64,000 nt of DNA, from contig NW_025765592.1 in NCBI RefSeq assembly GCF_003918875.1, positions 372,001-436,000 of the forward strand, in the 5' to 3' direction. Source of the stretch: Haliotis rubra. Lineage: Eukaryota. Under the pieces are notes generated by a model. It was not told where the DNA came from. It ran no database searches and saw nothing but the letters and a program-made list of their open reading frames with translations. Shown in pieces: positions 4,823-50,600 of the stretch. A program made the position numbers and the translations under genes. The stretch's first letter is position 1. Every line of letters begins with the position of its first letter.

Positions 4823-6070
4823 TCTTTAAGTAATGTGACGTACGCTAATCGTAGGATAACATGCGGAGGTCATTTTTCACTGTAATGTGCAACACACTGA
4901 CTCGTGTCACTGTATGTTTCAAAAAATTTACCCCAACCGCTTGCAAGAAATTCATAAGATATTTTCAATGGAATAATCAATTTCTAACCCCCTACAATCA
5001 TGCAACCTCGTTTCCAGTTACTCCCAAATGAAAATATTCCCTACTTTTTTAACTGTACAGATAACATAAATCAGAGGTAACTGAGTTAGTATGAACAAGG
5101 TAGTTGAGCGGAGCTGTACCTTGACTTCAGGTGGAGAATCTGCAAGTCATCCAGCAAGGCCGTCAGTCTGATTACAGTATGTGTAAAGTAAACTCAGGGG
5201 GACTTCGATCATGCAGTCAATAGTGTTTGGAGGGGGATAGAATGACATGATTTTAACCAAGTTATCAAGCCAAACAGACACTTTAAGTCGTTTGCTACAA
5301 CACATATGGATCCAGAAGCATTTCTTAGTGACCCAACACAAGTAATATATATAGTCGTTCATAAAACCTCATGCCCTCATTTGATCGTGACATACCCTGT
5401 AGTGATTACTGAACAGTGGGTGAGTGGTTCAGTGAGCGAGTGGTTGAGTGAGTTGTTGAGTGGTAGGGCGGTTGAGTGGGTGAGTGAGTGAGTGACTTTG
5501 GGCTATAAAGTTGAAAGTAATATGCTGTTATAGAACACTCACTCACGTATGCACGCATTGACTTACTCACTCTAAAACCATTCAGTTCTCAATTGAACAG
5601 ACATTCTGAACTCACCTATACCTTGTCAAAGACAGACATCTTATGAACGCACCACCATTTCGCTTGATCGCAACCCCTAAACACAACGCATGGAATCCAT
5701 CGTGCACAGCGCAGTAGCTCCATACACGTGCATGGGGTGTCATTTTTTTATTTTAGCGGTTTTCAAAAATATCGAAAAATCATTTTCACAATCATTTTGC
5801 ATCACATATTTTTAGCCGTTTTGGTTCTTTTTGGTTTGAAAATGAAAATCATACACATGCAAATTTCACGTCATACACAAATCATCTTTCAAGAGCGATA
5901 ACTGTATGAACAACTATGGTCATAAGAAAGTGCAAGTGGTGAACAGTCTCGAAACAGTCATTATAATAATATCAACATTCATTGACTCCCATATATCGCC
6001 CAATTCTTTCAATCGTAAAATATAAATGAGGTTTCCCTACTTTTCTTGAGGAGCATATATCTGAGATTTT

Positions 6071-7277: not shown

Positions 7278-10005
7278 ATGTGGACAGGAATGAGACTTGC
7301 ATTTGCGACGCTTGTTACGTTATTGCTGGTGTTGCCTACTGTGAAAACAAAGGAAGTGTCAACTCTGAATGGCCCACTTCTAGGACAACGTCTGTCAGTG
7401 TTGGGCAAGTCTCTTTGACGTATTCTATGGAATTCCATATGCCAAGCCTCCTGTAGGTGATCTCCGCTTCAAATACCCTCAGCCTTCAGAGTCATGGGGA
7501 CCGGAAGTTAGAGATGCACAAAACCCGACGCCATCTTGCTTCCAACCAAAAAATGCTCATGGCACTGATGAAAGTTACAAACAGATGCCCGATGATTACA
7601 GTGAAGACTGCCTTCACCTTACAGTGTGGGCGCCATCAGCCAATGCTGGCAATCTGGCAGTCATGGTCTGGATCCACGGCGGAGCTTTTTATATTGGATC
7701 TACAAGACTGCCACTGTATGAAGGAAAATACATTGCAGCAGAGAATGACGTCATCGTTGTTTCAATGAATTACAGATTGGGGCCTCTAGGGTTCAGTTAC
7801 CTTGGTCCAGATACCATCCCTGGAAATATGGGCTTGGTGGATCAAAGATTAGCCTTACAGTGGGTGAAAGACAATATTGCCAACTTTGGTGGAGATCCAA
7901 CCCGAGTCACCATATTTGGAGAAAGTGCTGGTGGTGCAAGTGTAGGTCTACACCTGGCATCACCTTTGTCACGTGACCTGTTCGACAGAGCAATCACACA
8001 GAGTGGGACCCTCACTTGCCCGTGGGCTTACACTTTTCCCAACACAGCAAAACAGAAACTGAAGAGATTTGCCAATCTCCTTGAATGCCCTTCATCTTCA
8101 ACTGATACAGAGATATATGAGTGCTTGAAGACAGCAGATGCACAAACTATGGCAGACCTTCAGCTAGGTTTGTTCGATGAAGGAATTCCATTTCGTCCAG
8201 TTGTGGATGGGAACTTCCTCCCCGATGACCCCAAAACTCTTCTGTCCACTGGCTCCATCAAGCAGACCAGTGTATTGCATGGTTTTACAAAGAACGAGAT
8301 GACTCTGTTTTCTGCACTGACATTGAAGCAGATGAGAAAAGTATCTGCATTACCGGAAACATTGATTTTAAGTCGCACAGAATATGAAAGTCTTAAGTTT
8401 AGCATTGGGAAATGTGGACGGAATCGAAGAACCTCTTCGCCTCTTTTATGAAAGTCAGAAAGCCCCCCCCTGAAAGAAAAAGACTATTTTGATGTCGTGA
8501 CTCGAGCGAGTACGGATAAGGCAATGAAGTGTCCTCATCTTGAGTTTGACAGATTGTACTCTCCTGCCAACCCTACCTACGTGTACAGTTTTAATCACCG
8601 ACTATCAGTTAGTCCGTTTCCACAGTGGATAGGAGCAGCCCACTGGTACGAGCTTGACTTTGTGTTTGGTTGGGTCCTGGAAAAGTCTCTGGGATGTACA
8701 GAGGAGGAGATGGAACTCAGCAGAACCATCATGACGTACTGGACCAACTTTGCCAAGTCAGGGTGAGTGAGTGAGTGGTACATATGACTTATTGAGTCAA
8801 TGATCGCCCTCAAACTTTTAAGACCTCTTAATCCTGAAAGAACAGCACAAAACACAAAGGAAACAACTTCTATCATTTTCATGTGTACAATGTCCAGAGA
8901 CCATTTATGTTGTCCACTGGCGTTTTCAAAATGTGTCAAAAACCTATTTCACCCTCTCCAATTAACATGATACCAAACCCGTGGAGATCCGGTTTAGAAT
9001 TGGTCTTCAGCAACTCATGTTTGTCGTAAGAGGAGACTAACGGGATCGGTTGGTCAGGCACGATGACAAGGTTGAAAATTGTCATTGTATACCACTGCAT
9101 AGCTCAATGTTCATGCTATTGATCACTGGATTATCTGGACCAGGTTCAATTAATTACAAATCGCCACCATACCATATAGCTGGAATATTGCTGAGTGTGG
9201 TGTTAAACAACAAATGAACCAAACAAACAAATAAACAAAACATCCTAGAACTCTTTTATTTACAGGAACCCGAACACTCCTGTCCCCGTCAAGGTGAACT
9301 GGCCAGCCTCTGACAACACTGATCTCTCCTACATGGCTCTTGACGTGGGCAGCAAATTAGCAGCAGGACACGGGGTAGTCCACCACGAATGTGTCTTCAT
9401 CAACAAGATTGTCCCCATGATTTCTAAAGGTAATGTTCATGATGGATAGTTAAATGGGAATGGTCGGGACCGACAGGTATTTCGAGTTATGCATAATATT
9501 CGAGACGCCGGCAGTCGACTCATCGGGATTTGACTGTAGTTGAATGGTTTCAGATGTGAATAGTTTCTCAAGTGATTATGATACTTATGTATACCAATAC
9601 GTCCATACTGATCCACGGATACTGATTGGTTCGTGTCAACATGTTCATGCCCATATGTTAATGCTGATACCATCATGTTGATATGTTCGTAATGTTACCT
9701 TTATACCAATACGTTCATGCGGACATGTTCCTGCCCATATGTGTAGTCATCTCAGTGTTGAGCCTTGTTTCATGAAAGAAGTTTTACCCCCAACTCACTC
9801 AACTTTTCACTATAACCATCGCTGGAAGACGTATGAGTTAATACAAAAGGCACCTTTGTTTGTAACCAGATGGCAACAGCCCCTCCCCATGTCACGCCTG
9901 GTTTATCGTTGTGGATATTACACTGACTGTAGCACGGCAAATAATGAGTCCATTTAATGCTTTTCAGATCCCCCTGAAGGGCAGGAGTACTGCACGAGAG
10001 GATGA
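7278..10005 (+). CDS. Cholinesterase-like carboxylesterase copy B (exons 7278-8762, 9266-9429, 9968-10005); frameshifted in this assembly
   Basis: Signal peptide, GIPYAKPP, SEDCL, HGGAF, GESAG, KNE, GAAHWYE and tail DPPEGQEYCTRG*. Indels at ~7414 (ttt), ~8408 (ggg) and ~8463 (C8). Confidence 0.85.
8977..9240 (+). mobile_element. SINE family 1, full length, in intron 2 of copy B
   Basis: Head cccgtggagatccgg...gtcgtaagaggagactaacggg; tail gctggaatattgctgagtgtggtgttaaac plus (aaac)n. Confidence 0.8.
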
Positions 10006-16778: not shown

Positions 16779-19307
16779 ATGGCAGCAGCAATGAAAATTG
16801 CGCTTGTTACGCTAGTGGCGGTCTTGCATATTGCAAAACACAGAAAGTGTCAACTGAAGATGGCCCACTTCTTGGACAACGTCTGTCACTGTTGGGCAAG
16901 TCCCTTGACGTATTCTATGGAATCCCATATGCCAAGCCTCCTGTAGGTGATCTCCGCTTCAAGCACCCCCAACCTTCAGAGTCATGGGGACCGGATGTTA
17001 GAGATGCACAGAAACCAACGCCATCTTGCATTCAACCTGAAGATGTATTCACATCTCCAGAGGTTTACAGACAGGTCCCGGATGATACCAGTGAAGACTG
17101 CCTTCATCTTACAGTGTGGGCGCCATCAGACAATGCTGGCAATCTGGCAGTGATGGTCTGGATCTACGGGGGAGGTTTCTATTTTGGATCTTCACGAATG
17201 CCACTATATGAAGGAAAATATCTTGCAGCAGAGAATGACATCATCGTTGTTTCAATGAATTACAGACTGGGGCCATTAGGGTTCAGCTATCTGGGGCCAG
17301 ATACCATCCCTGGAAACATGGGCTTGATGGATCAACGACTTGCCTTACAGTGGGTGAAAGACAACATTGCCAACTTTGGTGGAGATCCATCTCGGGTGAC
17401 AATATTTGAGAAAGTGCTGGTGGTGTCAGCGTAGGACACCACCTGGTGTCACCATTGTCACGTGACTTATTTCAGAGAGCCATCATGCAGAGCGGATCCC
17501 CGAATTTCCCATGGGCTTACACTTTTCCACACACAGCAAAACGGAAATTGAAGCAGTTTGCTGATCTCCTTGGATGCCCGTCATCTTCAACTGATGCAGA
17601 GATCTATGACTGTGTAAAGAAAGCAGATGCTCAAACTATGGCAGACCTTCAGCTTAGTGATTTGTTAGATGAAGGACTTGCATTTGGTCCAGTTGTGGAT
17701 GGGCACTTCCTCCCCAATGACCCCAAACTCTTCTGACCACCGGTTCCAACAAGCAGGCTAGTGTAATGCATGGTTTTACTAAAGACGAGTTAACATTGTC
17801 TATAGCAGTTGCTTTGAAGCAGATGAGAAACATATCTTCATTACCGGAAACATTGATTTTAAGCCGCACAGAGTATGAAAGTTTTCTTTCCTATGATAGA
17901 ATAGGTGGTAAAGGATTTGAAGAGCCTCTTCGCCTGTTTTATGAAAGTCAAACATCCCTCTTAGGGACACTCACTATTTGGATGTCATGACTCGCATGAT
18001 GTCAGATAGGGATTTCAAGTGTCCTCATCTTGAGTTTGACAGATTGTACTCTCCTGCCAACCCTACCTACGTGTACAGTTTTAATCACCGACTATCAGTT
18101 AGTCCGTATCCAAAGTGGATAGGAGCAACCCATTGGTATGATGTTGAGTTTGTGTTTGGTTTGGTCCTGGAAAAGTATCTGGGATGTACAGAGGAGGAGA
18201 TGGAACTCAGCAGGACCATCATGACCTATTGGACCAACTTTGCCAAGTCAGGGTGAGTAATAGAGTGCAATTGAGAGTGTGAGTGAGTGGCGAGTGATAG
18301 TGTGAGTTGGACAGAGTAAGTGAAAAATCGAGTCATGGAATTACGCAGGTTAATAGTCTCGGAACAGATGAGCGAGTGAGTGAGAGATCCCTCACTCGGT
18401 CTTATATTATTGTTCTTTACATGTTCAAACAATTTCACCTCAGATAAAAATTGATTCCCATTTCCAAACAGATCGATTTGTATTGTTTTCTTGAAGCTTT
18501 CATATCTTTATACAGCAACCCTAACACTCCTGTCCCCGTCAAGGTGAACTGGCCAACCTCTGACAACACTGATCTCTCCTACATGGCTCTTGACGTGGGC
18601 AGCAACTTAGCAGCGGGACACGGGGTAGTCCACCACGAATGTGTCTTCATCAACAGGATTCTACCCATGATTTCTAAAGGTAATGTGTTGTTATGATGGG
18701 ATGTCGCTTGTTGCAATTACACATATTTGAATGTAGCTGTGTCTAAAACACTCAAAAACAGATCGATATGTCAAAGGAAGCATAGTTTTGTCTTTCCATT
18801 CCAAGTCAAGTCTCTCTTGGCTTCCATACGATTTTCCAAACACCAGTAAAATATGTGCCTCCTCCTTGGTCATGGTTTGACAATGACTTCTTAATGCGAA
18901 ATCATGGAAAATGCGTATTACCCCACATCAATAATGGCTGTGGTTTTAACCAAAGGCAATTACAGACACAAAGAATACCCAGCGTATCAGGTGCTATACA
19001 GTGACGTAATGTATATGGAAAACAACCATAGAACATGTGTAACGAGGAAGACTTCAACTATTGCCAATTGCGTTCAGGACTTCTCCCAGATTTAATTATT
19101 TGCTTGTCGTCATCGTATCCAGCTCCCTGATTTCATAAAGCTGTGAATGTCTGGAACCCACATCACGTTTTGTTTGCCAACCAGTTAAGAACACGCCCAC
19201 TCGTGTCTGTCTTGCTGTAGTGTTGCTGGAGCAGCCAGGGAAGTTATGAATCATATTGTTGTGTTTCAGACCCACCGGAAGGGCAGGACTACTGCACCAA
19301 AGGATGA
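16779..19307 (+). CDS. Cholinesterase-like copy C, the most divergent paralog (exons 16779-18252, 18516-18679, 19270-19307); frameshifted in this assembly
   Basis: YGGGF, [G]ESAGGVS, QSGSPNFPW, KDE, GATHWYD and tail DPPEGQDYCTKG*. Four -1 indels at ~16836, ~17407, ~17726 and ~17965, all in mononucleotide runs. Confidence 0.85.
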
Positions 19308-19554
19308 CAACATCTTAATAATCGGACCTGAGTATAAAATATAAATACACGATTAAAATTCAGGTTTAATGTTGTTTTGATGTTTATTAGTTATATGGCT
19401 TGCTGCCATGTAGATCTGTCAATGACGTCATTGAATAAATATTTGGCCTATGTTCTGTTGTTCAGTATTTAATCTATTTAAGCATGCTGTGTCCTGCAAG
19501 GCCAAGAACCTAACAAACACACACATCACGTTGCAATTCACAATATATACTGAA

Positions 19555-20272
19555 CAGGAACCCAAGGAACCCAAGGAACCCAAGATACCCAAGGAACCCA
19601 AGGAACCAAAGAAATCAAAGGAACCCAAGGAACCCAAGATACCCAAGGAACCCAAGAAATCAAAGGAACCCAAGGAACCCAAGATACCAAAGGAACCTAA
19701 GGAAAGGGAACCCAAGGAACCCAAGGTACAATAGGAACCCAAAGTACCCAAGGAACCCAAGATACCCAAGGAACCCAAGGAACCAAGGAACCAAGGAGAT
19801 AACCAAGGAACCCAAGGTACCCAAGGAACCCAAGATACCCAAGAGGCCAAGGAACCCAAGGAACCCCAAAGGAACCCAAAGGAACCCAAGATACCCAAGG
19901 AACCCAAGGAACCCAAAGGAACCTAAGGAACCCAAGATAACCAAGGAACCCAAGGTACAATAGGAACCCAAAGTACCCAAGGTACCCAAGGAACCCAAGG
20001 AACCCAAGGAACCCAAGGAACCCAAGATAACCAAGGAACCCAAGGTACAATAGGAACCCAAGATAACCAAGGAACCCAAGGTACAATAGGAACTCAAAGT
20101 ACCCAAGGAACCCAAGGAACCCAAGGAACCCAAGATAACCAAGGAACCCAAGGTACCCAAGGAACCCAAGATAACCAAGGAACCCAAGGTACAATAGGAA
20201 CCCAAAGTACCCAAGGAACCCAAAGTACCCAAGGTACCCAAGGAACCCAAGGAACCCAAGGAACACAAGGAA
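19555..20272. repeat. 9-bp minisatellite (aaggaaccc and variants)
   Basis: Direct tandem repeat; it produces the KEP/LGS/GFL low-complexity ORFs. Confidence 0.95.
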
Positions 20273-20549
20273 CACATTGTGACGACTGCCAGCATGGTGA
20301 TGCCTACTACCATTCTTACCTCGTTCATAACCAGCTGCCAAAAGGAAGTTGAAGTCAAAGAACCAATAGACATCCACATGACGTGACAATGCACGATATT
20401 CTGAAAATCTGAGAAACACATTCAAAATAGAGATTTCCTCTATTGTCAGATTGTCAGTGATGCTTTCTAACATTCGTCCATCTTTCCTGGTGATCCCCTT
20501 AAGGGTTGGTGGACAGTCAACGTCAAGACGTGTATGATGTTACCTTTGA

Positions 20550-22420: not shown

Positions 22421-22489
22421 TAAATAAAATAAATCCAAATAGGATTGCCAGTCACCAACATTCATGCTGTTTACACACGTGTCTATAAT

Positions 22490-23340
22490 ACTACTGCAGT
22501 GTCCTCCCTGTGTGATAAAACAACGACATTTCAGTTGTACGTCCTCCCTGTGTGATAAAACAACGACATTCAGTTGTACAGGAAATACTACTGCAGTGTC
22601 CTCCCTATGTGATAAAACAACGACATTCAGTTGTACAGGAAATACTACTGCAGTGTCCTCCCTGTGTGATAAAACAACGACATTCAGTTGTACAGGAAAT
22701 ACTACTGCAGTGTCTTCCTGTGTGATAAAACAACGACATTCAGTTGTACAGGAAATAGTACTGCAGTGTCCTCCCTATGTGATAAAACAACGACATTCAG
22801 TTGTACAGAAATACTACTGCAGTGTCTTCCTGTGTGATAAAACAACGACATTCAGTTGTACAGGAAATACTACTGCAGTGTCCTCCTATGTGATAAAACA
22901 ACGACATTCAGTTGTACAGGAAATACTACCACTGCAGTGTCTTCCTGTGTGATAAAACAACGACATTCAGTTGTACAGGAAATAGTACTGCAGTGTCTTC
23001 CATGTGTGATAAAACAACGACATTCAGTTGTACAGGAAATACTACTGCAGTGTCCTCCCTGTGTGATAAACCAACGACATTCAGTTGTACAGGAAATACT
23101 ACTGCAGTGTCCTTCTGTGTGATGATAAACCAACGACATTCAGTTGTACAGGAAATACTAAATACTACTGCAGTGCCCTCCCTGTGTGATAAAACAACGA
23201 CATTCAGTTGTACAGGAAATAGTACTGCAGTGTCCTCCCTGTGTGATAAAACAACGACATTTCAGTTGTACAGGAAATAGTACTGCAGTGTCTTCCATGT
23301 GTGATAAAACAACGACATTCAGTTGTACAGGAAATACTAC
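22490..23340. repeat. 57-bp minisatellite, ~15 units
   Basis: Period 57 (22591 to 22648). Confidence 0.95.
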
Positions 23341-26345: not shown

Positions 26346-28984
26346 ATGTGGACAGGAATGAAACTTGCATTTGCGACGCTTGTGACGTTGTTGCTTGAGT
26401 TGCATGTTGCAAAAACACAGAAAGTGTCAACACTAAATGGCCTCTTCTAGGACAACGTCTGTCAGTGTTGGGCAAGTCCCTTGACGTATTCTATGGAATC
26501 CCATATGCCAAGCCTCCTGTAGGTGATCTCCGATTCAAGCACCCTCAACCTTCAGAGTCATGGGGACCGGAAGTTAGAGATGCACAAAAACCGACGTCAT
26601 CTTGCTTCCAACCAAAAAATGCTCATGGCAGTGATGAAAGTTACAAACAGATGCCCGATGATTACAGTGAAGACTGCCTTCATCTTACAGTGTGGGCGCC
26701 ATCAGACAATGCTGGCAATCTGGCAGTGATGGTCTGGATCCACGGTGGAGGTTTTTATATTGGATCTACAAGACTGCCACTGTATGAAGGAAAATACATT
26801 GCAGCAGAGAATGGAGTCATCGTTGTTTCAATGAATTACAGATTGGGGCCTTTAGGGTTCAGCTACCTTGGTCCAGATACCATCCCTGGCAACATGGGCT
26901 TGGTGGATCAAAGATTAGCCTTACAGTGGGTGAAAGACAATATTGCTAACTTTGGTGGAGATCCAAAACGGGTGACCATATTTGGAGAAAGTGCTGGTGG
27001 TGCAAGTGTAGGTCTACACCTGGCATCACCGCTGTCACGTGACCTGTTTGACAGAGCAATAATGCAGAGTGGGACTCTCATCTCCCTATTTGCAGACCAC
27101 ATGCCCAAAACAGCAATACGGACACTGAAGAGACTTGCTGATCACCTTGAGTGCCCTTCATCTTCAACTGATACAGAGATATATGAGTGCTTGAAGACAG
27201 TAGATGCACAAACTATGGCAGACCTTCAGCTAGGTTTGTTCGGTGAAGGAATTGCATTTCGTCCAGTTGTGGATGGGTACTTCCTCCCCGATGACCCCAA
27301 AATTCTTCTGTCCACTGGCTCCATCAAGCAGACCAGTGTATTGCATGGTTTTACTAAAGATGAGACAGCACTGTTTTCTGCAATGATATTGAAGCAGATG
27401 AGAAACGTATCAACATTACCTGAATCACTCATTTTAAGTCGTCAAGAATATGATAATTTTATTTCATTTGACATGCTCACTGGAACAGACATTGAAGAGC
27501 CTATTCGTCTGTTTTATGAAAGTCAGATACCCCTTCTAAAGGACACGGACTATTTAGAGGTCGTAACTCGTGCAACTTCAGACAGGGGATTTAAGTGTCC
27601 TCATCTTGAGTTTGACAGATTATATTCTCCTGCTAACCCTACCTATGTCTACAGCTTTAATCATCGACTGTCAATTAGTCCGTATCCAAAGTGGATGGGA
27701 GCACCCCACTGGTACGAGCTTGACTTTGTTTTGGTTGGGTTCTGGAAAAGTCTCTGGGATGTACAGAGGAGGAGATGGAACTCAGCAGGACCATCATGAC
27801 GTACTGGACCAACTTTGCCAAGTCCGGGTGAGTGAGTGACTGAATGAGCGAATGAAATATACATTCAATGATAAAAACGTTTTACTAAGTCACCCTTCTT
27901 TAAATTATACCACAGATAAATGTGTATAAAATAATCATGATTTCTTGATGTTTTCTTATGTGTATCCAGCGATCCAAACGCTCCTGTCCCCGTCAAGGTG
28001 AACTGGCCAGCCTCTGACAACACTGATCTCTCCTACATGGCCCTTGACGTGGGCAGCAAATTAGCAGCAGGACATGGGGTAGTCCACCATGAATGTGTCT
28101 TCATCAACAGGATTCTACCCATGATTTCTAAAGGTAAATCTATAATGGTACATTGGTTCCTGGTACACATAAATGAATATTTTAGAAGTGACTTGGATAC
28201 TTCTCTTGTTTGGTTGAATATTTACGATGATAAGTAATGTTGTTGATTTTCTTTAATTATCACGAATGGTTGGAACAGACTCGTTTATATTGGTAGTTGT
28301 TGATTCTCAAGTTAAAACAAAATAGTTAACAGGGAATCAGTCTGTACGAGAATTGTGTGTGAAATTGAGAAACAAAAAAGATGTAATTAAACATTGTATT
28401 TCTTAAATTGTAAAGTCGCAAATCAATACAAAGACTTCACTTTGGGAGAGTGAGTGAGTGAGTTTAGTTTTACGCCCACACTCTGTAATATATGGCGGCG
28501 GCCAGTAAATAATCAAGTCTGGACCAGACAATCCAGTGATGAGCATCGATCTACACAACTGGGATACGATGACACACTTTGGCAGAACAAAATAGAGTGG
28601 CAGTACAAAGTCAGAGGTATAATATAACAGCAGTGATTGTAGACATAAAGACAATGATGGTCATAGTGACCTGTCAGCAATAGAAATTCAACTTGGAAGA
28701 AAGGGCCAGGCAGAGAGTATACAAAGTTTAAAGTGACCACTCACAATACTGGTCTTCTTGTGACTCGAGATGTGATGTGAGATGAAAGGCAATAGCTAAG
28801 TAAGATTCACTGACTGAATCTACAGGTACAAAGTATACCTTGAAACATTGTTGCACAACGTTTAACACTGCCTCATGGCAGCATGTTCATGCCAATATGT
28901 TCAATAGTGCAGCTATGGAAATTATGAATTCATGGTTGTGTTTCAGACCCACCGGAGGGGCAGGAGTACTGCACAAGAGGATGA
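26346..28984 (+). CDS. Cholinesterase-like copy D (exons 26346-27827, 27970-28133, 28947-28984); two frameshifts in this assembly
   Basis: 444-aa ORF with HGGGF, GESAG, KDE and GAPHWYE. -1 indels at ~26441 (cc) and ~27730 (T4 where the paralogs A and E have T5). Confidence 0.88.
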
Positions 28985-30615: not shown

Positions 30616-31427
30616 TCATAAATACCGTTTGAATCTGCCTCTATTCTCAAGACAATCTCGGATTCGTCGAGACATACTTTTCGTGAAACGTCCAATGTAA
30701 ACTTGGTTCATTCTATCCCATTCTTCCTGCAGCGCTTCGCCAAGTTCATTAAGAGTGGTGGGTGGTTGTTGACTCCGTCTAAGGATATCCCAGACATGTT
30801 CGATGGGTGATAAGTCTGGACTAAGTGCTGGCCATGGTAAGGTGGTTATGTTCTCCTCCTGGAGGATGTGTTCTCCTACTGGAGGATATGTTCTCCTCCT
30901 GGAGGATATGTTCTCCTCCTGGAGGTTATGTTCTCCTCCTGGAGGTTATGTTCTCCTCCTGGAGGATATGTTCTCCTCCTGGAGGATATGTTCTCCTCCT
31001 GGAGGTTATGTTCTCCTCCTGGAGGTTATGTGTTTCCTCCTGGAGGTTATGTTCTCCTCCTGGAGGATGTGGATATGTTCTCCTCCTGGAGGATGTGTTC
31101 TCCTACTGAGGTTATGTTTCCTCCTCCTCCTGGATGTTCTCCTCCTGGAGGTTATGTTCTCCTGGAGGTTATGTTCTCCGAGGATGTGTTCTCCTCCTGG
31201 AGGTTATGTTCTTCTCCTCTCCTGGAGGTTATGTTCTCCTCCTGGAGGATGTGTTCTCCTCCTGGAGGTTATGTTCTCCTCCTGGAGGATATGTTCTCCT
31301 CCTGGAGGTTATGTTCTCCTCCTGGAGGTTGTGTTCTCCTCCTGGAGGTTATGTTCTCCTCCTGAAGGATATGTTCTCCTACTGGAGGATATGTTCTCCT
31401 CCTGGAGGTACTCCGTAACAACAACGA
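30616..31427 (-). mobile_element. Tc1 remnant with the 20-bp minisatellite (30846-31408, ~28 units); duplicate of 3470-4822
   Basis: Flanks near-identical to 3470-3710 and 4800 onward. Confidence 0.85.
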
Positions 31428-32682
31428 TGTCTTTAAGTAATGTGACGTACGCTAATCGTAGGATAACATGCGGAGGTCATTTTTCACTGTAATACGCAAC
31501 ACACTGACTCGTGTCACTGTATGTTTCAAAAAATTTACCCCAACCGCTTGCAAGAAATTCATAAGATATTTTCAATGGAATAATCAATTTCTAACCCCCT
31601 ACAATCATGCAACCTCGTTTCCAGTTACTCCCAAATGAAAATATTCCCTACTTTTTTAACTGTACAGATAACATAAATCAGAGGTAACTGAGTTAGTATG
31701 AACAAGGTTATTGAGCGGAGCTGTACCTTGACTTCAGGTGGAGAATCTGCAAGTCATCCAGCAAGGCCGTCAGTCTGATTACAGTATGTGTAAAGTAAAC
31801 TCAGGGGGACTTCGATCATGCAGTCAATAGTGTTTGCAGGGGGATAGAATGACATGATTTTAACCAAGTTATCAAGCCAAACAGACACTTTAAGTCGTTT
31901 GCTACAACACATATGGATCCAGAAGCATTTCTTAGTGACCCAACACAAGTAATATATATAGTCGTTCATAAAACCTCATGCCCTCATTTGATCGTGACAT
32001 ACCCTGTAGTGATTACTGAACAGTGGGTGAGTGGTTCAGTGAGCGAGTGGTTCAGTGAGTGGGTGAGTGGTTCAGTGAGTGGTTGAGTGGTTGGGCGGTT
32101 GAGTGGGTGAGTGAGTGAGTGACTTTGGGCTATAAAGTTGAAAGTAATATACTGTTATAGAACACTCACTTACGTATGCACGCATTGACTCACTCACTCT
32201 TAAACCATTCAGTTCTCAATTGAACAGACATTCCGAACTCACCTATACCTTGTCAAAGACAGACATCTTATGAACGCACCACCATTTCGCTTTATCGCCA
32301 CCCCTAAACACAACGCATGGGATGCACGTGCACAACGCAGTAGCTCCATACACGTGCATGGGGTGTCATTTTTTTATTTTGACGGTTTTCAAAAATATCG
32401 AAAAATCATTTTCACAATCATTTTGCATCACATTTTTCTAGCCGTTTTGGTTCTTTTTGGTTTGAAAATGAAAATCATATACATGCAAATTTCACGTCAT
32501 ACACAAATCATCTTTCAAGAGCGATAACTGTACGAACAACTATTGTCATAAGAAACAGTCCCAAAACAGTCATTATTATAATATCAACATTCATTGACTC
32601 CCATATATCGCCCAATTTTTTCAATCTTAAAATATAAATGAGGTTTCCCTACTTTTCTCGAGGAGCATATATCTGAGATTTT

Positions 32683-33849: not shown

Positions 33850-36800
33850 ATGTGGACAGGAATGAGACTTGCATTTGCGACGCTGGTGACGTTGTTGCTG
33901 GTGTTGCCTACTGTGAAAACAAAGGAAGTGTCAACTTTAAATGGCCCACTTCTAGGACAACGTCTGTCAGTGTTGGGCAAGTCCCTTGACGTATTCTATG
34001 GAATCCCATATGCCAAGCCTCCTGTGGGTGATTTTCGCTTCAAGCACCCTCAGCCTTCAGAGTCATGGGGACCGGAAGTAAGGGATGCACAAAACCCGAC
34101 GCCATCTTGCTTCCAACCAAAAAATGCTCATGGCAGTGATGAAAGTTACAAACAGATGCCCGATGATTACAGTGAAGACTGCCTTCATCTTACAGTGTGG
34201 ACACCATCAGAAAATAGTGGCAATCTAGCAGTGATGGTCTGGATCCACGGTGGAGGTTTTTATATTGGATCTACAAGACTGCCACTGTATGAAGGAAAAT
34301 ACATTGCAGCAGAGAATGGAGTCATCGTTGTTTCAATGAATTACAGATTGGGGCCTTTAGGGTTCAGCTACCTTGGTCGAGATACCATCCCTGGCAACAT
34401 GGGCTTGATGGATCAAAGATTAGCCTTACAGTGGGTGAAAGACAATATTGCCAACTTTGGTGGAGATCCAACACGGGTGACCATATTTGGAGAAAGTGCT
34501 GGTGGTGCAAGTGTAGGTCTACACCTGGCATCACCTTTGTCACGTGACCTGTTTGACAGAGCAATAATGCAGAGTGGGACTCTCATCTCCCCATTTGCAG
34601 ATAACATGCCCAAAACAGCAATACGGACACTGAAGAGACTTGCTGATCTCCTTGAATGCCCTTCATCTTCAACTGATACAGAGATATATGAGTGCTTGAA
34701 GACAGCAGATGCACAAACTATGGCAGACCTTCAGCTAGGTTTGCTCGGTGAAGGAATTCCATTTCGTCCAGTTGTGGATGGGAACTTCCTCCCCGATGAC
34801 CCCAAAAGTCTTCTGTCCACTGGCTCCATCAAGCAGACCAGTGTATTGCATGGTTTTACTAAAAATGAGACAGCACTGTTTTCTGCAATGATACTGAAGC
34901 AGATGAGAAACGTATCAACATTGCCGGAAACACTCATTTTAAGTCGTCAAGAATATGATAATTTTATTTCATTTGACATGGTCACTGGAACAGACATTGA
35001 AGAGCCTATCCGTCTGTTTTATGAAAGTCAGATACCCCTTCTAAAGGACACTGACTATTTTGATGTCGTGACTCGCGCAACTTCGGATAGGGATTTCAAG
35101 TGTCCTCATCTTGAGTTTGACAGATTGTACTCTCCTGCTAACCCTACCTATGTCTACAGCTTTAATCACCGACTATCAATTAGTCCGAATCCAAAGTGGA
35201 TGGGAGCACCCCACTGGTACGAGCTTGACTTTGTTTTTGGTTGGGTTCTGGAAAAGTCTCTGGGATTTACAGAGGAGGAGATGGAACTCAGCAGGACCAT
35301 CATGACGTACTGGACCAACTTTGCCAAGTCCGGGTCAGTGAATGAATGAGCGAATGAAATATACATTCAATGACGAAAACGTTGTATTAAGTCACCCTTC
35401 TTTAAATTATACCACAGATAAATGTCTAAAATAATCAAGATTTCTTTAAGCTTTCTTATTTGTATCCAGCGATCCAGTAATTTTAAATGATACCAAATAT
35501 ATCATACAGTTTCAAATCTGTATCCAGCGATCCGAACGCTCCTGTCTCCGTCAAGGTGAACTGGCCAGCCTCTGACAACACTGATCTCTCCTACATGGCC
35601 CTTGACGTTGGCAGCAAATTATCAGCAGGACATGGGGTAGTCCATCACGAATGTGTCTTCATCAACAGCATTCTACCCATGATTTCTAAAGGTAAATTTA
35701 TAATGGTACATTGGTTCCTGATACACATAATTAAATGTTTTTTAGATGTGACTTGGATACTTCTCTTGTTTGGTTAAATATTTACGATGATAAGTAATGT
35801 TGTTGTTTTTCTTCAATTATCACGAATGGTTGGAACTGACTCGTTTATATTGGTAGTTGCTGATTCTCAAGTTAAAACTATATAGTTAACCGGGACTCAG
35901 TCTGTAAGAGAATTATGTGTGAAACTAAGAAACAAAAAAGATGTAATTAAAAATTGTATTTCTAAAATTGTAAAGTCGCAAATCAATACAAAGACTTCAC
36001 TTTGGAAGAGTGAGTGAGTGAGTTTAGTTTTACGCCCACACTCTGTAATATATGGCGGCGGCCAGTAAATAATCAAGTCTGGACCAGACAATCCAGTGAT
36101 GAGCATCGATCTACACAACTGGGATACGATGACACACTTTGACAGAACAAAATTGAGTGGCAGTACAAAGTCAGAGGTATAATATAACAGTAGTGATTGT
36201 GGGAGTAAAGACAATGATGGTTATAGTGACCTGTCAACAACAGAGGTATAATATAACAGTAGTGATTGTAGGAGTAAAGACAATGATGGTCATAGTGACC
36301 TGTCAACAACAGAGGTATAATATAACAGCAGTGATTGTAGGAGTAAAGACAATGGTGGTCATAGTGACCTGTCAACAACAGAGGTATAATATAACAGCAG
36401 TGATTGTAGGAGTAAAGACAATGATGGTCATAGTGACCTGTCAGCAACAGAGGTATAATATAACAGCAGTGATTGTAGGAGTAAAGACAATGATGGTCAT
36501 AGTGACCTGTCAGCAACAGAGGTATATATAACAGCAGTGATTGTGAGTAAAGACAATGGTGGTCATAGTGACCTGTCAGCAACAGAGGTATAATATAACA
36601 GCAGTGATTGTAGGAGTAAAGACATGGTGGTCATAGTGACCTGTCAGCAACAGAGGTATAATATAACAGCAGTGATTGTAGGAGTAAAGACAATGGTGGT
36701 CATAGTGACCTGTCAGCAACAGAGGTATAATATAACAGCAGTGATTGTAGGAGTAAAGACAATGGTGGTCATAGTGACCTGTCAGCAACAGAGGTATAAT

Positions 36801-37445
36801 ATAACAGCAGTGATTGTAGGAGTAAAGACAATGGTGGTCATAGTGACCTGTCAACAACAGAGGTATCATATAACAGCAGTGATATAAAACAGCAGTGACC
36901 TGTATGGTGGTCAAGACAAGTGACCTGTCAGCAACAGAGGTATAATATAACAGCAGTGATTGTAGGAGTAAAGACAATGGTGGTCATAGTGACCTGTCAG
37001 CAACAGAGGTATAATATAACAGCAGTGATTGTAGGAGTAAAGACAATGGTGGTCATAGTGACCTGTCAGCAACAGAGGTATAATATAACAGCAGTGATTG
37101 TAGGAGTAAAGACAATGATGGTCGTAGTGACCTGTCAGCAATAGCAATCCAACTTGGAAGAAAGGGCCAGGCAGAGAGTAAACAAAGTTTAAAGTGAACA
37201 CTCACAATACTGGTCTTCTTGTGACTCGAGATGTGATGAGAGATGAAAGGCAATAGCTAAGTAAGATTCACTGACTGAATCTACAGGTACAAAGTATACC
37301 TTGAAACATTGTTGCACAACGTTTAACACCGTCTCATGGCAGCATGTTCATGCCAATATGTTCCATAGTGCAGCTATGGTAATTATGAATTCATGGTTGT
37401 GTTTCAGACCCACAGGAGGGGCAGGAGTACTGCACAAGAGGATGA
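33850..37445 (+). CDS. Cholinesterase-like carboxylesterase copy E, intact, 561 aa (exons 33850-35333, 35528-35691, 37408-37445)
   Basis: Signal peptide; triad Ser (GESAG, 34495), Glu (KNE, 34867), His (35212); GGGF oxyanion loop; three cholinesterase-type Cys pairs. Spliced length 1686 nt is in frame. Confidence 0.93.
36172..37142. repeat. 69-bp minisatellite, ~14 units, in intron 3 of copy E
   Basis: Period 69 (36172 to 36241); single-copy at the same site in A and D. Confidence 0.95.
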
Positions 37446-42436: not shown

Positions 42437-44892
42437 ATGTGGACAGGAATGAGACTTGCATTTGCGACGCTTGTGGCGTTGTTGCTGGTGCTGCCTACTG
42501 TGAAAACAAAGGAAGTGTCAACTCTGAATGGCCCACTTCTAGGACAACAACTGTCAGTGTTGGGCAAGTCTCTTGACGTATTCTATGGAATCCCATATGC
42601 GAAGCCTCCTGTAGGCGATCTACGCTTCAAGTACCCTCAGCCTTCAGAGTCATGGGGACCGGAAGTAAGGGATGCACAAAACCCGACACCATCTTGCTTC
42701 CAACCAATAGGTGCTCATGACACACCTGAGAAGCACAAACAGATGCCCGATGATTACAGTGAAGACTGCCTCCATCTTACAGTGTGGGCGCCATCAGACA
42801 ATGGTGGCAATCTGGCAGTGATGGTCTGGATCCACGGTGGAGGCTTCTATTTTGGATCTACAAGGCTGCCACTGTATGAAGGAAAATACCTTGCAGCAGA
42901 GAATGACATCATCGTTGTATCAATGAATTACAGATTGGGGCCTTTAGGGTTCAGCTACCTCGGGCCAGACACCATCCCTGGCAACATGGGCTTGATGGAT
43001 CAAAGATTAGCCTTACAGTGGGTGAAAGACAATGTTGCCAACTTTGGTGGAGATCCAACCCGAGTCACCATATTTGGAGAAAGTGCTGGTGGTGCAAGTG
43101 TAGGTCTACACCTGGCATCACCTCTGTCACATGACCTGTTTGACAGAGCAATCACACAGAGTGGGACCCTCACTTGCTCATGGACATACACGGTGCCCAA
43201 AACAGCAAAAGGAAAATTGAAGAGATTTGCTGATCTCCTTCAATGCCCTTCATCTTCAACTGATACAGAGATATATGATTGCTTGACGTCAGCAGACGCT
43301 CAAACTATGGCAGACCTTCAACTTGTTTTGCTAGATGAAGGAATACCATTTCCTCCAGTTGTGGATGGGTACTTCGTCCCCGATGACCCCAAAGCTCTTC
43401 TGTCCACTGGCTCCATCAAGCAGACCAGTGTATTGCATGGTTTTACTAAAGATGAGACAACACTGTTTTCTGCAATGACTTTGAAACGTTCCCTGAGAAA
43501 CGTATCCACATTACCTGAATCACTGATTTTAAGTCGTCAAGAATATGATAGTTTTCTTTCATTTGACATTGTCACTGGAAAGGACATTGGAGAGCCTATT
43601 CGTCTGTTTTATGAAAGTCAGATACCCCTTCTCAAGGACACTAACTATTTAGATGTCGTAACTCGTGCAACTTCAGACAGGGGATTTAAGTGTCCTCATC
43701 TTGAGTTTGACAGATTGTACTCTCCTGCCAACCCTACCTATGTCTACAGTTTTAATCGCCGACTGTCAGTTAGTCCAAATCCACAGTGGATGGGAGCACC
43801 CCACTGGTACGAGCTTGACTTTATGTTTGGTTGGGTCCTGGAAAAGTCTCTTGGATGTACAGAGGAGGAGATGGAACTCAGCAGGACCATCATGACCTAC
43901 TGGACCAACTTTGCCAAGTCCGGGTGAGTGAATGAATGAATGAGCGAGTGAAATGGTATTATTTTAAATGACATCATGTACATGATACTAAACAGAACGA
44001 TCAATATTTTCTTTCAAATATTCAAGATTTACTGAAGTTTTCGTATCTATATACAGCAATCCGAACGCTCCTGTCCCCGTCAAGGTGAACTGGCCAGCCT
44101 CTGACAACACTGATCTCTCCTACATGGCCCTTGACGTGGGCAGCAACTTATCAGCAAGACATGGGGTAGTCCATCACGAATGTGTCTTCATCAACAGGAT
44201 TCTACCCATGATTTCTAAAGGTAATGTTGTTATGATGGGATATCAGTTTTTAACAGTTACATGCAATACATGTATTGATGTTGAAATCGCTTAACGGAAT
44301 ACCGTAATTTCATTTCAGTATGGTCCAATCAAGTGGTTCATTCCAAAATTGTCATAATGCTATAATGCCAGTATGTCTGTGCCATGTACCCATTAAGAGT
44401 TTTCTCAGAATGTTCATGTTAATTTCAAAATGTCACTACTGATATGCATGGCCCTTACAGTTTGATCGCAGAGATCATTTCTAGTGTCTGTGCTTCTCCT
44501 GCCTGAGACGATATGCTCCTAGAGGCAGTGGGGTAGCCTAGTGGTTTAAACGTTTGCTCGTCATGCAGAAGACCCAGGTTCAATTGCCCACATGGGTACA
44601 ATGTGCAGAGTCCATTTCTAGTGTCCCCCGCCATGATATTGCTGGAATCTTGCTAAAAGCGGTGTAAAACCATACACACTCTCTCCCTCACTCACTCACT
44701 CACATTTATGCTACTAGTAAATAACTGTAACAATAAAAGGGCAACAATACCCAACATGATCGACTGAAGTCTGCAAATTGTTGAGAATGTACATTGTTTG
44801 TTCATGATACAAACGTGCAGCCAGGGAAATCATGAATTTATCCTTGTTTTTCAGACCCACCGGAAGGGCAGGAGTATTGCACAAAAGGATGA
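42437..44892 (+). CDS. Cholinesterase-like carboxylesterase copy F, intact, 562 aa (exons 42437-43923, 44057-44220, 44855-44892)
   Basis: Signal peptide, HGGGF, GESAG, KDE, GAPHWYE and tail DPPEGQEYCTKG*. Spliced length 1689 nt is in frame. Confidence 0.93.
44522..44703 (+). mobile_element. tRNA-derived SINE family 2 in intron 3 of copy F
   Basis: A box tagcctagtgg, B box ggttcaattgc, (cact)n tail. Confidence 0.85.
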
Positions 44893-45402
44893 AAGTACAG
44901 CATTATAATAATCAGAGCCGCACTATAATAATCTAACAATAAGGTTTGACATTGCCAGGAACAGATTATTGTCCAAAGTCTTAGAGAGTCCTCAGAGATA
45001 CTGTGACACCTATAGTCTATACTCAACCACCAATCCCTTTCAGACAACGTGAAGACACCCCTATGTAGCCTTCAATGATGTGATGAAATAAATAATTTGC
45101 CAGCATTATGTTGTTCCTTATGGTGGGTGCCCAATCTTAGAAACACTGCATAGCTCACATAGGCAGTATTATTCCCATGGGGTTGAGAATGATGATTGAA
45201 GATATATGGATCTCCTGTTTAGGAAACAAACAGACCTGTATTTAGCATATACTATCATCCGAAAAAGATTGGTATATAAATGCATAATTTATGTATATAT
45301 TCATATCAGCTTCAGATAAATCAGATGCAACTCCGTATAGTTATGTATCACTTTTTAAGCTGGAACTATGAGTTAACCAGAAATCTGTATATAGCAACCA
45401 AC

Positions 45403-46142
45403 NNNNNNNNNNNNNNNNNNNNNNNNNNNNNNNNNNNNNNNNNNNNNNNNNNNNNNNNNNNNNNNNNNNNNNNNNNNNNNNNNNNNNNNNNNNNNNNNNN
45501 NNNNNNNNNNNNNNNNNNNNNNNNNNNNNNNNNNNNNNNNNNNNNNNNNNNNNNNNNNNNNNNNNNNNNNNNNNNNNNNNNNNNNNNNNNNNNNNNNNNN
45601 NNNNNNNNNNNNNNNNNNNNNNNNNNNNNNNNNNNNNNNNNNNNNNNNNNNNNNNNNNNNNNNNNNNNNNNNNNNNNNNNNNNNNNNNNNNNNNNNNNNN
45701 NNNNNNNNNNNNNNNNNNNNNNNNNNNNNNNNNNNNNNNNNNNNNNNNNNNNNNNNNNNNNNNNNNNNNNNNNNNNNNNNNNNNNNNNNNNNNNNNNNNN
45801 NNNNNNNNNNNNNNNNNNCTCAGCTTTCATTGTGCACCTGAAGAGCCGTTGAACGGGGAAAGACCTTGTGCATATATAAAGGAGATTTGACAAGAAGAAA
45901 TATCTGGACTCATATTTTATATATTTTTTGCTTATACNNNNNNNNNNNNNNNNNNNNNNNNNNNNNNNNNNNNNNNNNNNNNNNNNNNNNNNNNNNNNNN
46001 NNNNNNNNNNNNNNNNNNNNNNNNNNNNNNNNNNNNNNNNNNNNNNNNNNNNNNNNNNNNNNNNNNNNNNNNNNNNNNNNNNNNNNNNNNNNNNNNNNNN
46101 NNNNNNNNNNNNNNNNNNNNNNNNNNNNNNNNNNNNNNNNNN
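45403..46142. other. Two assembly gaps (45403-45818, 45938-46142) at the end of the array
   Basis: Runs of N. Confidence 1.
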
Positions 46143-46320: not shown

Positions 46321-46980
46321 TCAATGACGAGTATGTCCACCATCGGCATTGAGAACAGCAGTGCATCGACGACGCATAGAGCCTATCAAACGTGCAAGGA
46401 AGGCTTGTGGGATGTCACGCCAGATTCTCTCAAGTTCTGTTGCAAGGTCAAGGACGTTATCTGGTGGATGAGGAAGACGGCGTAGACGTCGATCCATCTC
46501 GTCCCTAACATGCTCTATCGGAGAGAGATCCGGTGAATTTGCAGGCCAAGGCAGTAAGTCAACGTTGTGGTGTTGCAAGAAATCAATAGCAGCCCTTGCC
46601 GTATGAGGGCGGGCATTGTCCTGTTGGAATGTTAACCCAGGGCCATGACGTTGCAGAAAAGGAATTGCCACAGGTCGAAGAATCTGATCCCTGTAGCCCA
46701 CACCAGTTAAGTTGCCCTGAACCGAAGGAGTTCTTTGGCGTGCTGTTATTCCACCCCAAATCATCACGGAACCACCACCAAAGCGATTACTCTCCAAGAC
46801 ACAGGCCTGTGCATAACGTTCTCCCACGCGTCCATAGGCACGTTGACGTCCATCACTATGGGAAATGTTAAACCTGGACTCATCTGTAAAAACAACATTT
46901 CTCCACCAAAACAAGGGTCTGCGGACATGATTTCGGCACCACATTCGGCGAGCTTGTCGATGACGTTGTGTCAGGATAGG
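46321..46980 (-). mobile_element. Tc1 DD34E transposase catalytic domain, 5'-truncated
   Basis: VFTDESRF, QQDNARPH and SPDLSPIEH, with 34 residues between the second D and the E. Confidence 0.93.
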
Positions 46981-47812
46981 CCGTCCCACTAACCGATCTT
47001 ATCTAAGACCATTCTTAGCAAATTACGCCAAGTTTACAATCGTCTTAGCTAAAAGTTACACTAACCGATCTTAGGCCAATCGAAGCCGGTGCCGATTTTA
47101 CGATCCGATCTAAGCTTAGATGGAGACTCTTTGGTGAGAAAGATAGATAAATGCGAGGCATGAGGTATCTCCTTTTGCATAGTCTAGCAAATGATGGAAG
47201 TAGTTTTGGAACCAAGTATAAAGGTGTGGAAAAATCCTCAAATAAAGTTTTAGGGTAGTGAGCACCTTGGTTTCAGGGGCAAGTGCGTGTGAACGCTGGG
47301 CATCAGGCATAATATGTGGCTGAACCTTGTCGATCAAAATAAACAAGGTGTGGTGAGGTATCCTCCACCTCACACCCTGTAATATAGGCACTGTTTGCTA
47401 TGTACAGAGGTGCAATATTGTCGTACAAATGTATTACACCGACACCCTCGGCTGTGTTCCCATGACGACAGTGATCAGACGGGCCTCACATTTGTAAGGC
47501 TTCAGTGCAGTGTTTGTTTACATCATTAAAATAAACAAATTCATTTCATGGACATTTTAGGGGACGTTCACGGTGAAATGCTCGCTCTTCTTCTTCACAT
47601 AAAATATGAAAGCCACCATTTTGGTTTCTCTACGATTGATTTTAGCGATCCTAAGTTGGTCATGTGCAACTTAGACTTTGGATCTTAACTTTACGATTGC
47701 CTTGGGTAAGATTGGTTAGTGGAACGGTGTGCCGATCGTAACGTCACACTAAGATTGGGATTTTAGGGGTTTACGATTGACGTAGGGCTAAGATCGGTTA
47801 GTGGAACGGCAC
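46979..47812 (-). mobile_element. Internally deleted PIF/Harbinger element abutting the Tc1
   Basis: TIRs gccgt(c/t)ccactaaccgatctta; HARBI1-like peptide LIDKVQPHI...RSHALAPETKVLTTLK. Confidence 0.75.
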
Positions 47813-49470: not shown

Positions 49471-50600
49471 TAGTATGACCAGAAATTATTGAGAATTTTA
49501 GGAATATGTTTAATTGGATTTCTAGTATAAACAACCTTGACCAGCTATCAAGTGCTTGGTTTCATTCAAGACAACTCCGTTAATCCTTTTTCATTAGTTT
49601 GTGAAGAGTTATCCCCCTTTGTTTACTTGCTAGCAGACGACATTTTCAGTGATCCTCAGTATGGATGATTTAGAGAAGAGGAAGTTGATTTTAGAGTATT
49701 ATAACAAGGACATCAGATCAGCTAAAGTGATTTCAAGTAGAACAGGCACCCCTTTGTCGACTGTTTATCGTGTTTTGAAAAATATTGCAAATGGATATGG
49801 CATTGAGCACCAGGGAGGCGCAGGTAGGCCCAGAAAATGGACTGTCGGTGACAGGAGGCGGCTTGGTATTCTTGTCGAAGGAGTTTAGAAAACTTAATGC
49901 TGTATATGATTGATAGAGGAACTGTGGCTGTATGTAAGGAGACAATTGGAACTGAGCTGCATGCAATGGGTTGGCAGAAAAGTCGAGGAATTCCATCACC
50001 GATCATGAAACCTGAACAAAAGGAGCGAAGGTTGAACTGGTGCTTACAGCATAGACATTTTAACTGGGACAATGTGATTTTCTCAGATGAAAGTTCTGTG
50101 TGGCTGTTTCCTAATACACTGAAATTCTGGACCAAACAAACTGAAAAACCTTTGTATCAGCGCCCAAAGTACAGTCCGAAATTTAACGTGTGGGGTGGCA
50201 TATCTGTGTTAGGGGCAACGCCCCTCTGTGTATTTGAAGGGAATATGAACAGTGAGCGGCACACAGATATTCTCGAGGGACATTTACTTCCATCTGCTCA
50301 CGTGTTCTGTGGAAATGTTTGGATTTTCCAGCAGGACAACGACCTAGAACATCGTTCAAAGCATTCACAGGCCTGGTTTCGGACCCAATATGACATTATT
50401 AGATTGGCCAAGCTATAGCCCTGACCTAAATCCAATAGAAAATGTTTGGGGACTTATGAAGGAAAGTGTCAATAAGAAAAATCTAAAAAATAGTGCTGTA
50501 ATGAAAGAAGAGGTGGTCCGATATTGGGACAGCATGAACCACGACTTTCTAACTTTAAAATTTACAATCTTTAAATTCTCAATAATTTCTGGTTGTACTG
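49471..50600 (+). mobile_element. Tc1-like transposon with both TIRs and a frameshifted transposase
   Basis: ~28-bp TIRs (..agta..accagaaattattgagaattt), TA on both sides. HTH plus GRPRK, FSDES, QQDND and WPSYSPDLNPIENVW. Confidence 0.92.

Follow-up and report, generated by a model that had tools for sequence, protein, structure and literature searches.

A 64-kb window of Haliotis rubra DNA, by which we mean the whole stretch that was analysed, contains six cholinesterase-like genes arranged head-to-tail at 7.5–9.5 kb spacing, all on the forward strand, which we refer to as copies A through F. Copies E and F are intact, each with three exons, and their products, of ~560 amino acids (aa), are predicted from the signal peptide to be secreted. 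In copy E, exon 1 (33850–35333) covers the signal peptide with the bulk of the catalytic domain and ends in phase 2 before the donor GT at 35334–35335, exon 2 (35528–35691) supplies the C-terminal helices with the Cys partner of Cys418, and exon 3 (37408–37445) encodes the terminal ..PQEGQEYCTRG and the stop codon. A 499-aa open reading frame (ORF; 33850–35349) contains the His-Trp codons discussed below. The full product of 561 aa starts with a signal-like helix and ends in a short tail with one Cys, which suggests a disulfide-linked dimer. Copy F (42437–44892) is intact throughout, with exon 1 at 42437–43923, its GAPHWYE motif at 43787, and exons 2 and 3 at 44057–44220 and 44855–44892.

The encoded active site is unusual in its omega loop and immediately after the catalytic His. 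In copy E, the omega loop lies between Cys87 and Cys111 (34108–34182, with the TGC codons at 34108–34110 and 34180–34182) and holds 23 residues and no Trp, the position of Torpedo W84 being taken by Gln102. The loops of copies B through F are all 23 residues long and Trp-free. The catalytic His455 (CAC, 35212–35214) is followed by Trp456 (TGG, 35215–35217), which stands at the position of Torpedo Gly441. The same His-Trp-Tyr can be read in all six copies, as MGAPHWYE in A (past an in-frame stop), GAAHWYE in B, GATHWYD in C, and GAPHWYE in D, E, and F. In Torpedo acetylcholinesterase (AChE), the corresponding C67–C94 loop has 26 residues, including W84, and the His motif is H440-G441-Y442. An earlier reading of the letters, hereafter the original prediction, had described the short Trp-free loop of copies B through F, the GA[P/A/T]H-W-Y[E/D] motif of all six copies (His at 35212, Trp at 35215), and these Torpedo features. 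Codons, loop counts, and alignment bear out each of these descriptions.

Residue equivalences were taken from a HMMER pairwise alignment of E with Torpedo AChE in mature numbering. Ser216, within GESAGG (codon 34495–34497), aligns with S200, and Glu340 (34867–34869), the middle residue of an N-E-T sequence (34864–34872), aligns with E327. This N-E-T forms a glycosylation sequon in E and reads D-E-T in F and N-E-M in B. Besides S200, E327, and H440, copy E retains E199, A201, the GGG oxyanion hole, W114, Y121, Y130, F331, Y442, and the disulfide cysteines. The changes comprise W84 to Q, Y70 to P, D72 to N, W432 to N, G441 to W, W279 to L, F330 to L, Y334 to K or M depending on the alignment, and, in E only, W233 to F. 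Furthermore, the acyl loop is four residues shorter through deletion of I287–F290, which removes both F288 and F290. The by-eye alignment of the original prediction had reached the same losses (W279, F288, F290, F330, and Y334) and the same shortening of about four residues. The loss of W432 goes beyond it.

Copy E belongs to the type-B carboxylesterase/lipase family, matching PF00135 over residues 24–498 with an E-value of 4.2e-139 and a score of 465 bits (cutoff 27). Its triad S216/E340/H455, HGGGF motif, and A217 align with Torpedo S200/E327/H440, G117–119, and A201, that is, Ser, Glu, and His stand in the expected GESAG, xxE, and GxxHxxE contexts together with a GGG/Ala oxyanion hole. An AlphaFold model of E computed with a 69-sequence alignment has a predicted local distance difference test score of 92.2 and a predicted template modelling (TM) score of 0.91. 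With this model, Foldseek returned butyrylcholinesterase (BChE) and Torpedo californica AChE at TM scores of 0.86–0.89 and E-values near 1e-53, indicating a cholinesterase-type alpha/beta fold. At the same time, E lacks the omega-loop Trp in a 26-residue Cys loop and the His-Gly-Tyr/Asp motif with W432 behind the choline site (it has H-W-Y, with Asn for W432). Among the peripheral and acyl-pocket residues Y70, D72, Y121, W279, Y334, F288, and F290, only Y121 survives. E and F show all the tested features of type-B carboxylesterases and fail the sequence tests for AChE and BChE (EC 3.1.1.7/8).

The closest structurally characterised proteins make the same point. The nearest sequences in the PDB are BChE and AChE, and both Torpedo californica AChE (1EA5/2W6C family) and human or swine BChE (6EMI, 9HGZ) share ~40% identity with E over the catalytic domain and the same fold. 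They also share with it the Ser-Glu-His triad, the GGG/Ala oxyanion hole, three disulfides, W114, Y121, Y130, F331, and Y442. In contrast, E has no W84, an omega loop of 23 rather than 26 residues, Asn for W432, Trp for G441, Leu for W279 and F330, no Y334, an acyl loop four residues shorter without F288 and F290, and, instead of a T-peptide, a short C terminus with one Cys. A canonical neuronal enzyme is known from abalone. Haliotis discus hannai AChE (OK509160) resembles the window's proteins in being a COesterase-family protein with a signal peptide and an FGESAG motif, but it has 599 aa, is reported to have its choline-binding site conserved and to be most strongly expressed in the cerebral ganglia (PMC9189711), and lies outside the group of 556–561 aa proteins to which E and F belong. 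Our literature search found no paper on an abalone esterase family of this kind, on His-Trp esterases, or on cholinesterase-like expansions in molluscs; the one paper it found on abalone AChE deals with the canonical gene just described.

The His-Trp pair is rare outside this group. Among 120 word-search matches, Trp after the catalytic His (position His+1) occurred only in a Haliotis-specific group with 73–89% identity and in none of the 90 other proteins. A word search limited to residues 436–480 gave 21 candidates, all from Haliotis, and no close His-Trp relative elsewhere. Since that short query is too insensitive for a family-wide survey, we used an exhaustive search of 1.84 billion cluster representatives and aligned, along with the earlier matches, all domains of the 150 best representatives. 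This gave 255 COesterase domains outside the clade with an aligned His, in which the next residue is Gly (160), Ala (41), Thr (16), Ser (15), Phe (9), Cys (6), Trp (1), Tyr (1), or Gln, Asn, Asp, His, or Val (1 each). The single Trp comes from Macrostomum lignano, where it lies in a fragmentary domain within a multi-domain model. The survey thus upholds the view of the original prediction that the active-site design is unusual (1/255 domains and 0/90 word-search matches).

His-Trp is nevertheless not the only case of a bulky aromatic residue at this position, judging from these alignments, and the aromatic-bearing proteins are uncharacterised. The nine His-Phe domains come mostly from chelicerate models named “acetylcholinesterase-1-like” (tick, spider, horseshoe crab, scorpion, and mite), and one of them is a chytrid domain whose parent protein also supplied the His-Tyr domain. 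Chelicerate proteins such as those of Ornithodoros (XP_064471428.1), Limulus (XP_013779867.1), Centruroides (XP_023243542.1), and Oedothorax (KAG8193089.1) resemble the abalone proteins in their bulky aromatic after the catalytic His, an omega loop shortened to 19–22 residues, and an intact Ser. They differ in having Phe rather than Trp, most retain both a Trp somewhere in the loop and Trp at 432, and their origin is independent. A separate observation from the same survey is that many top representative matches are multi-domain models with two to eight COesterase domains (e.g., P0121 of Macrostomum lignano with 3380 aa, P0139, and P0173). Gene prediction has probably joined neighbouring members of tandem arrays in these cases, which shows widespread tandem expansion of the COesterase family in invertebrates.

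The relatives of E and F form a clade restricted to Haliotis, with at least 26 full-length paralogue clusters from four species. In the maximum-likelihood tree, the 26 clusters are monophyletic (Shimodaira-Hasegawa-like approximate likelihood ratio test support of 100) on a long stem. The clade includes RefSeq models P0002–P0028 of H. rubra, H. asinina, H. rufescens, and H. cracherodii, which share 73–89% identity and mostly carry His-Trp. Their names, “cholinesterase 1-like” or “acetylcholinesterase-like,” are automatic, the proteins are uncharacterised, and the cholinesterase function that the names imply is unsupported by the active-site residues. W441 is found in every major sublineage and in 18 of the 26 full-length paralogues, with the other states (S, S, M, S/A, G, and T/S) nested among them; P0019, for instance, has His-Gly and P0006 His-Ser. 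The minimum is six changes at this position, one gain on the clade stem and at least five replacements by S, T, M, G, or A, the latter count being approximate owing to the weak support for many of the inner forks.

The nearest Haliotis sister groups place these changes in order. Their omega loops are already short, at 22–23 residues, and models P0031–P0036 have no loop Trp and carry G, S, or T at 441, while models P0037–P0043 have a loop Trp at a different place and S or T at 441. Since sister groups without W84 still have G, S, or T at 441, W84 must have been lost before W441 was gained. Within the clade, we found no clear pattern of covariation between 441 and the equivalents of 84, 432, and 233. 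Weak co-changes with 441 were seen only at positions 129, 431, and 63, with too few independent lineages for a test. Positions 129 (L to Q or a gap) and 431 (P to S, T, or A) are each changed in three of the six non-W lineages and are invariant in all 18 W paralogues. Residue 431 adjoins 432 in sequence, and residue 129 is reportedly a back-door wall residue. These co-changes hint that the indole may pack at that wall.

Variation among the paralogues is concentrated around the pocket, and the catalytic core is fixed. All 26 paralogues share the same triad, E199, A201, and oxyanion hole. Between E and F, the ratio of nonsynonymous to synonymous substitution rates (dN/dS) is 0.31 overall, and therefore both genes are under purifying selection. 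The ratio is higher locally, at 0.6–0.95 in the omega loop, 0.7–0.8 over codons 221–280, and 1.9 over codons 301–340, where dS is very small. Positions equivalent to the gorge aromatics plus D72 have an entropy of 1.13 among the paralogues, against a background of 0.57 (permutation p = 0.002). The most variable segments are the omega-loop tip, residues 229–237, the acyl loop, 328–338, and 358–400, and position 441 ranks 59th of 493. Such a profile is that of an esterase multigene family in which the substrate pocket diversifies and the catalytic core stays constant.

Members of the family are transcribed and spliced as predicted. Three small runs (X1, X2, and X4) bearing the same species label, and guessed to be RNA, yielded contigs that join 35330 to 35530 with the intron removed, so that the exon junctions assigned to E are seen in RNA-like sequence. 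One X2 contig continues directly after 35691 into the exon-3 letters of a close paralogue. The RNA-like runs have zero depth over introns and flanks, and a DNA run covers all of the region. The spliced contigs are 95–99% identical to E, with paralogue-type differences at the junction, and contigs spanning 35195–35246 carry the His-Trp codons unchanged.

How, then, should Trp456 be interpreted? In a published simulation, tetramethylammonium in the choline site starts 5.09 Å from Gly441 (PMC10357547), and, in the back-door region, the thin walls separating the pocket from solvent are formed by W84 and Y442 (PMC3795623; PMC12447245). It follows from this distance and this wall that a side chain at 441 must lie in or against the wall, and the simulation agrees with the placement of G441 next to W84 in the original prediction. 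The functional roles of AChE residues, including the peripheral and acyl-pocket lists used above, are compiled in PMC12447245. Among the non-clade representatives, Gly at His+1 is associated with an omega-loop Trp (109/28 vs 23/42, odds ratio 7.1, p = 1.6e-9, in a statistic that ignores shared ancestry). We read this association as a sign that residue 441 is kept small beside W84 and is released once W84 is lost.

Our preferred reading, which we hold to be probable though well short of certain, is that the genes encode Haliotis-specific secreted carboxylesterases descended from a cholinesterase-like ancestor whose choline site was dismantled. The choline-specific features given up are W84, the full-length omega loop, W432, W279 and Y70, the acyl loop with F288 and F290, F330, and Y334. 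In true cholinesterases, adjacency to W84 and the choline subsite would keep Gly441 small; with W84 lost, the position would be free to accept a side chain, and Trp would have been fixed there once, in the ancestor of the clade. Trp441 would most likely add thickness to the wall vacated by W84 and W432 or fill part of it. Since then, 441 would have been exchanged repeatedly, as one among many residues that line the pocket and adjust substrate range from one paralogue to the next. E and F themselves are probably active serine carboxylesterases that belong, within the type-B family, to the cholinesterase branch and form part of an abalone-specific tandem expansion. They may act on neutral or other non-choline esters and, perhaps, have a detoxifying or digestive role.

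Several observations weigh against this reading. The shared ancestry ignored by the odds ratio is one of them, and another is that loops vary in any family, so that the enrichment of variability at pocket positions is partly expected. The retention of W441 in 18 of 26 paralogues argues for some selective value rather than pure drift. In addition, the transcripts may derive from paralogues or alleles instead of E itself. Finally, copies A through D are all disrupted in this assembly (four of the six copies, a point that, like the loss of W432, was absent from the original prediction), which may mean either that part of the array is decaying or that the assembly contains indel errors.

The original prediction offered two roles for the Trp. 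One is a true migration, in which the indole of Trp456 takes over the volume and role of W84, a cation-pi subsite is rebuilt from the His loop on the opposite pocket wall, and choline or other quaternary-ammonium esters are still bound. W84 and W432 are indeed absent and W441 present in the same proteins, Gly441 lies ~5 Å from the bound tetramethylammonium (PMC10357547), the W84/Y442 back-door wall is thin (PMC3795623) with Y442 invariant in the clade, and wall positions 129 and 431 change in lineages that lost W441 (3/6 each) and are invariant in the 18 W paralogues. However, compensation for W84 does not agree with the order of events, in which W84 was lost first, nor with the replacement of W441 at least five times by the smaller S, T, M, G, or A with no new loop Trp. 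The other choline and peripheral residues (Y70, D72 in E, W279, F330, and Y334) were lost as well, and the chelicerate His-Phe proteins mostly keep a loop Trp. Migration is not needed to explain the data, and we regard it as distinctly unlikely, although, if true, it would provide a naturally occurring case in which a functional residue has moved within an active site. The other role is that of a plug, sealing the former choline pocket, or a back door opened by the short omega loop, to leave a small closed alcohol pocket suited to small neutral esters. Such a plug is compatible with our preferred reading, of which it would be a specific version, and is favoured by the proximity of 441 to the choline site and back-door wall (PMC10357547; PMC3795623) and by the omega and acyl loops being three and four residues shorter; yet some paralogues have S, G, or A at 441 and evidently do without a plug. 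We consider it possible but unlikely.

It is also conceivable that the array consists mostly of pseudogenes, or of non-catalytic binders or scavengers, and that His-Trp reflects neutral drift. The nonsense codon in A and the frame changes in B, C, and D in this assembly would fit such decay. Against it stand the intact three exons of both E and F, their dN/dS of 0.31, a triad and an oxyanion hole that do not vary across the 26 paralogues, which come from four species, and the existence of spliced transcripts, and we judge it highly improbable. For E and F, the intact exons and dN/dS led us to reject a pseudogene array, a reading that may still hold for A through D. A non-catalytic cholinesterase-like adhesion protein was rejected because the triad is invariant in the 26 paralogues.

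Cholinesterases almost always have Gly at 441, and the debates over choline binding and the back door centre on the W84/Y442 wall. The Haliotis clade offers a natural series of at least 26 close, apparently functional paralogues in which W84 and W432 are missing and residue 441 is W, M, S, T, A, or G. It could therefore serve as a ready mutational panel for the role of residue 441 and the omega-loop Trp in pocket shape, substrate range, and inhibitor sensitivity. Moreover, about 30 abalone RefSeq models labelled “acetylcholinesterase-like” or “cholinesterase 1-like” should probably not be taken for cholinergic enzymes. Such naming matters for ecotoxicology, where mollusc “ChE” genes and activities are used as pesticide biomarkers.

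The four disrupted copies differ in the nature of their lesions. Copy A (2–679), cut at its 5' end by the window start, has an in-frame stop at the Trp435 codon just before MGAPHWYE, and its exon 2 (825–987) is frameshifted. Exon 1 of copy B (7278–8760) corresponds to RefSeq model P0002 and changes frame near 7414, 8400, and 8470. Its oxyanion motif is HGGAF rather than HGGGF, with Ala at the equivalent of Torpedo G119 (7684–7686), and P0002 has the same residue. Exon 1 of copy C (16823–18250), which corresponds to P0021, contains three frame changes, one of them within the GESAG motif. In copy D, exon 1 (26346–27825), corresponding to P0005, changes frame near its 5' end and just after HWYELDFV. 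Models P0002 and P0021 run through frame breaks that are present in the window DNA of copies B and C, so that either the assembly contains indel errors or the models have been repaired.

The array is also rich in repeats. A minisatellite of 14 copies of a 69-bp unit (93% matches; 36172–37141) makes up most of intron 2 of copy E, and exon 3 consequently lies ~1.7 kb downstream, compared with ~0.6 kb in F. At 35463–35480, about 50 bp 5' of the acceptor in use (35527/35528), the acceptor and the first bases of exon 2 recur in nearly identical form (tgtatccagcgatcc). Two long minisatellites, at 3609–4885 and 30803–31492, have the common unit VLLLEDMFSSWRLCSPPGGY (from the ORF listing) and lie downstream of copies A and D. 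These copies are 93% and 92% identical to E, respectively, and in both of them ISPYPK precedes the His motif. The shared repeat suggests that it was part of the duplication unit of the array and that A and D form a pair of recent origin. Between copies C and D, further minisatellite-type repeats with CDKTTTFSCTGNTTAVSS units and LGSLG- or LGFLGY-type translations are found at 19428–20473 on the reverse strand and 22464–22952 on the forward strand. Lastly, downstream of copy F and adjoining a run of N at ~45400–45850, the ORFs at 46321–46989 (reverse strand) and 49897–50418 (forward strand) resemble remnants of Tc1/mariner-type transposases, with DDE-region motifs such as FQQDNARPHTA.

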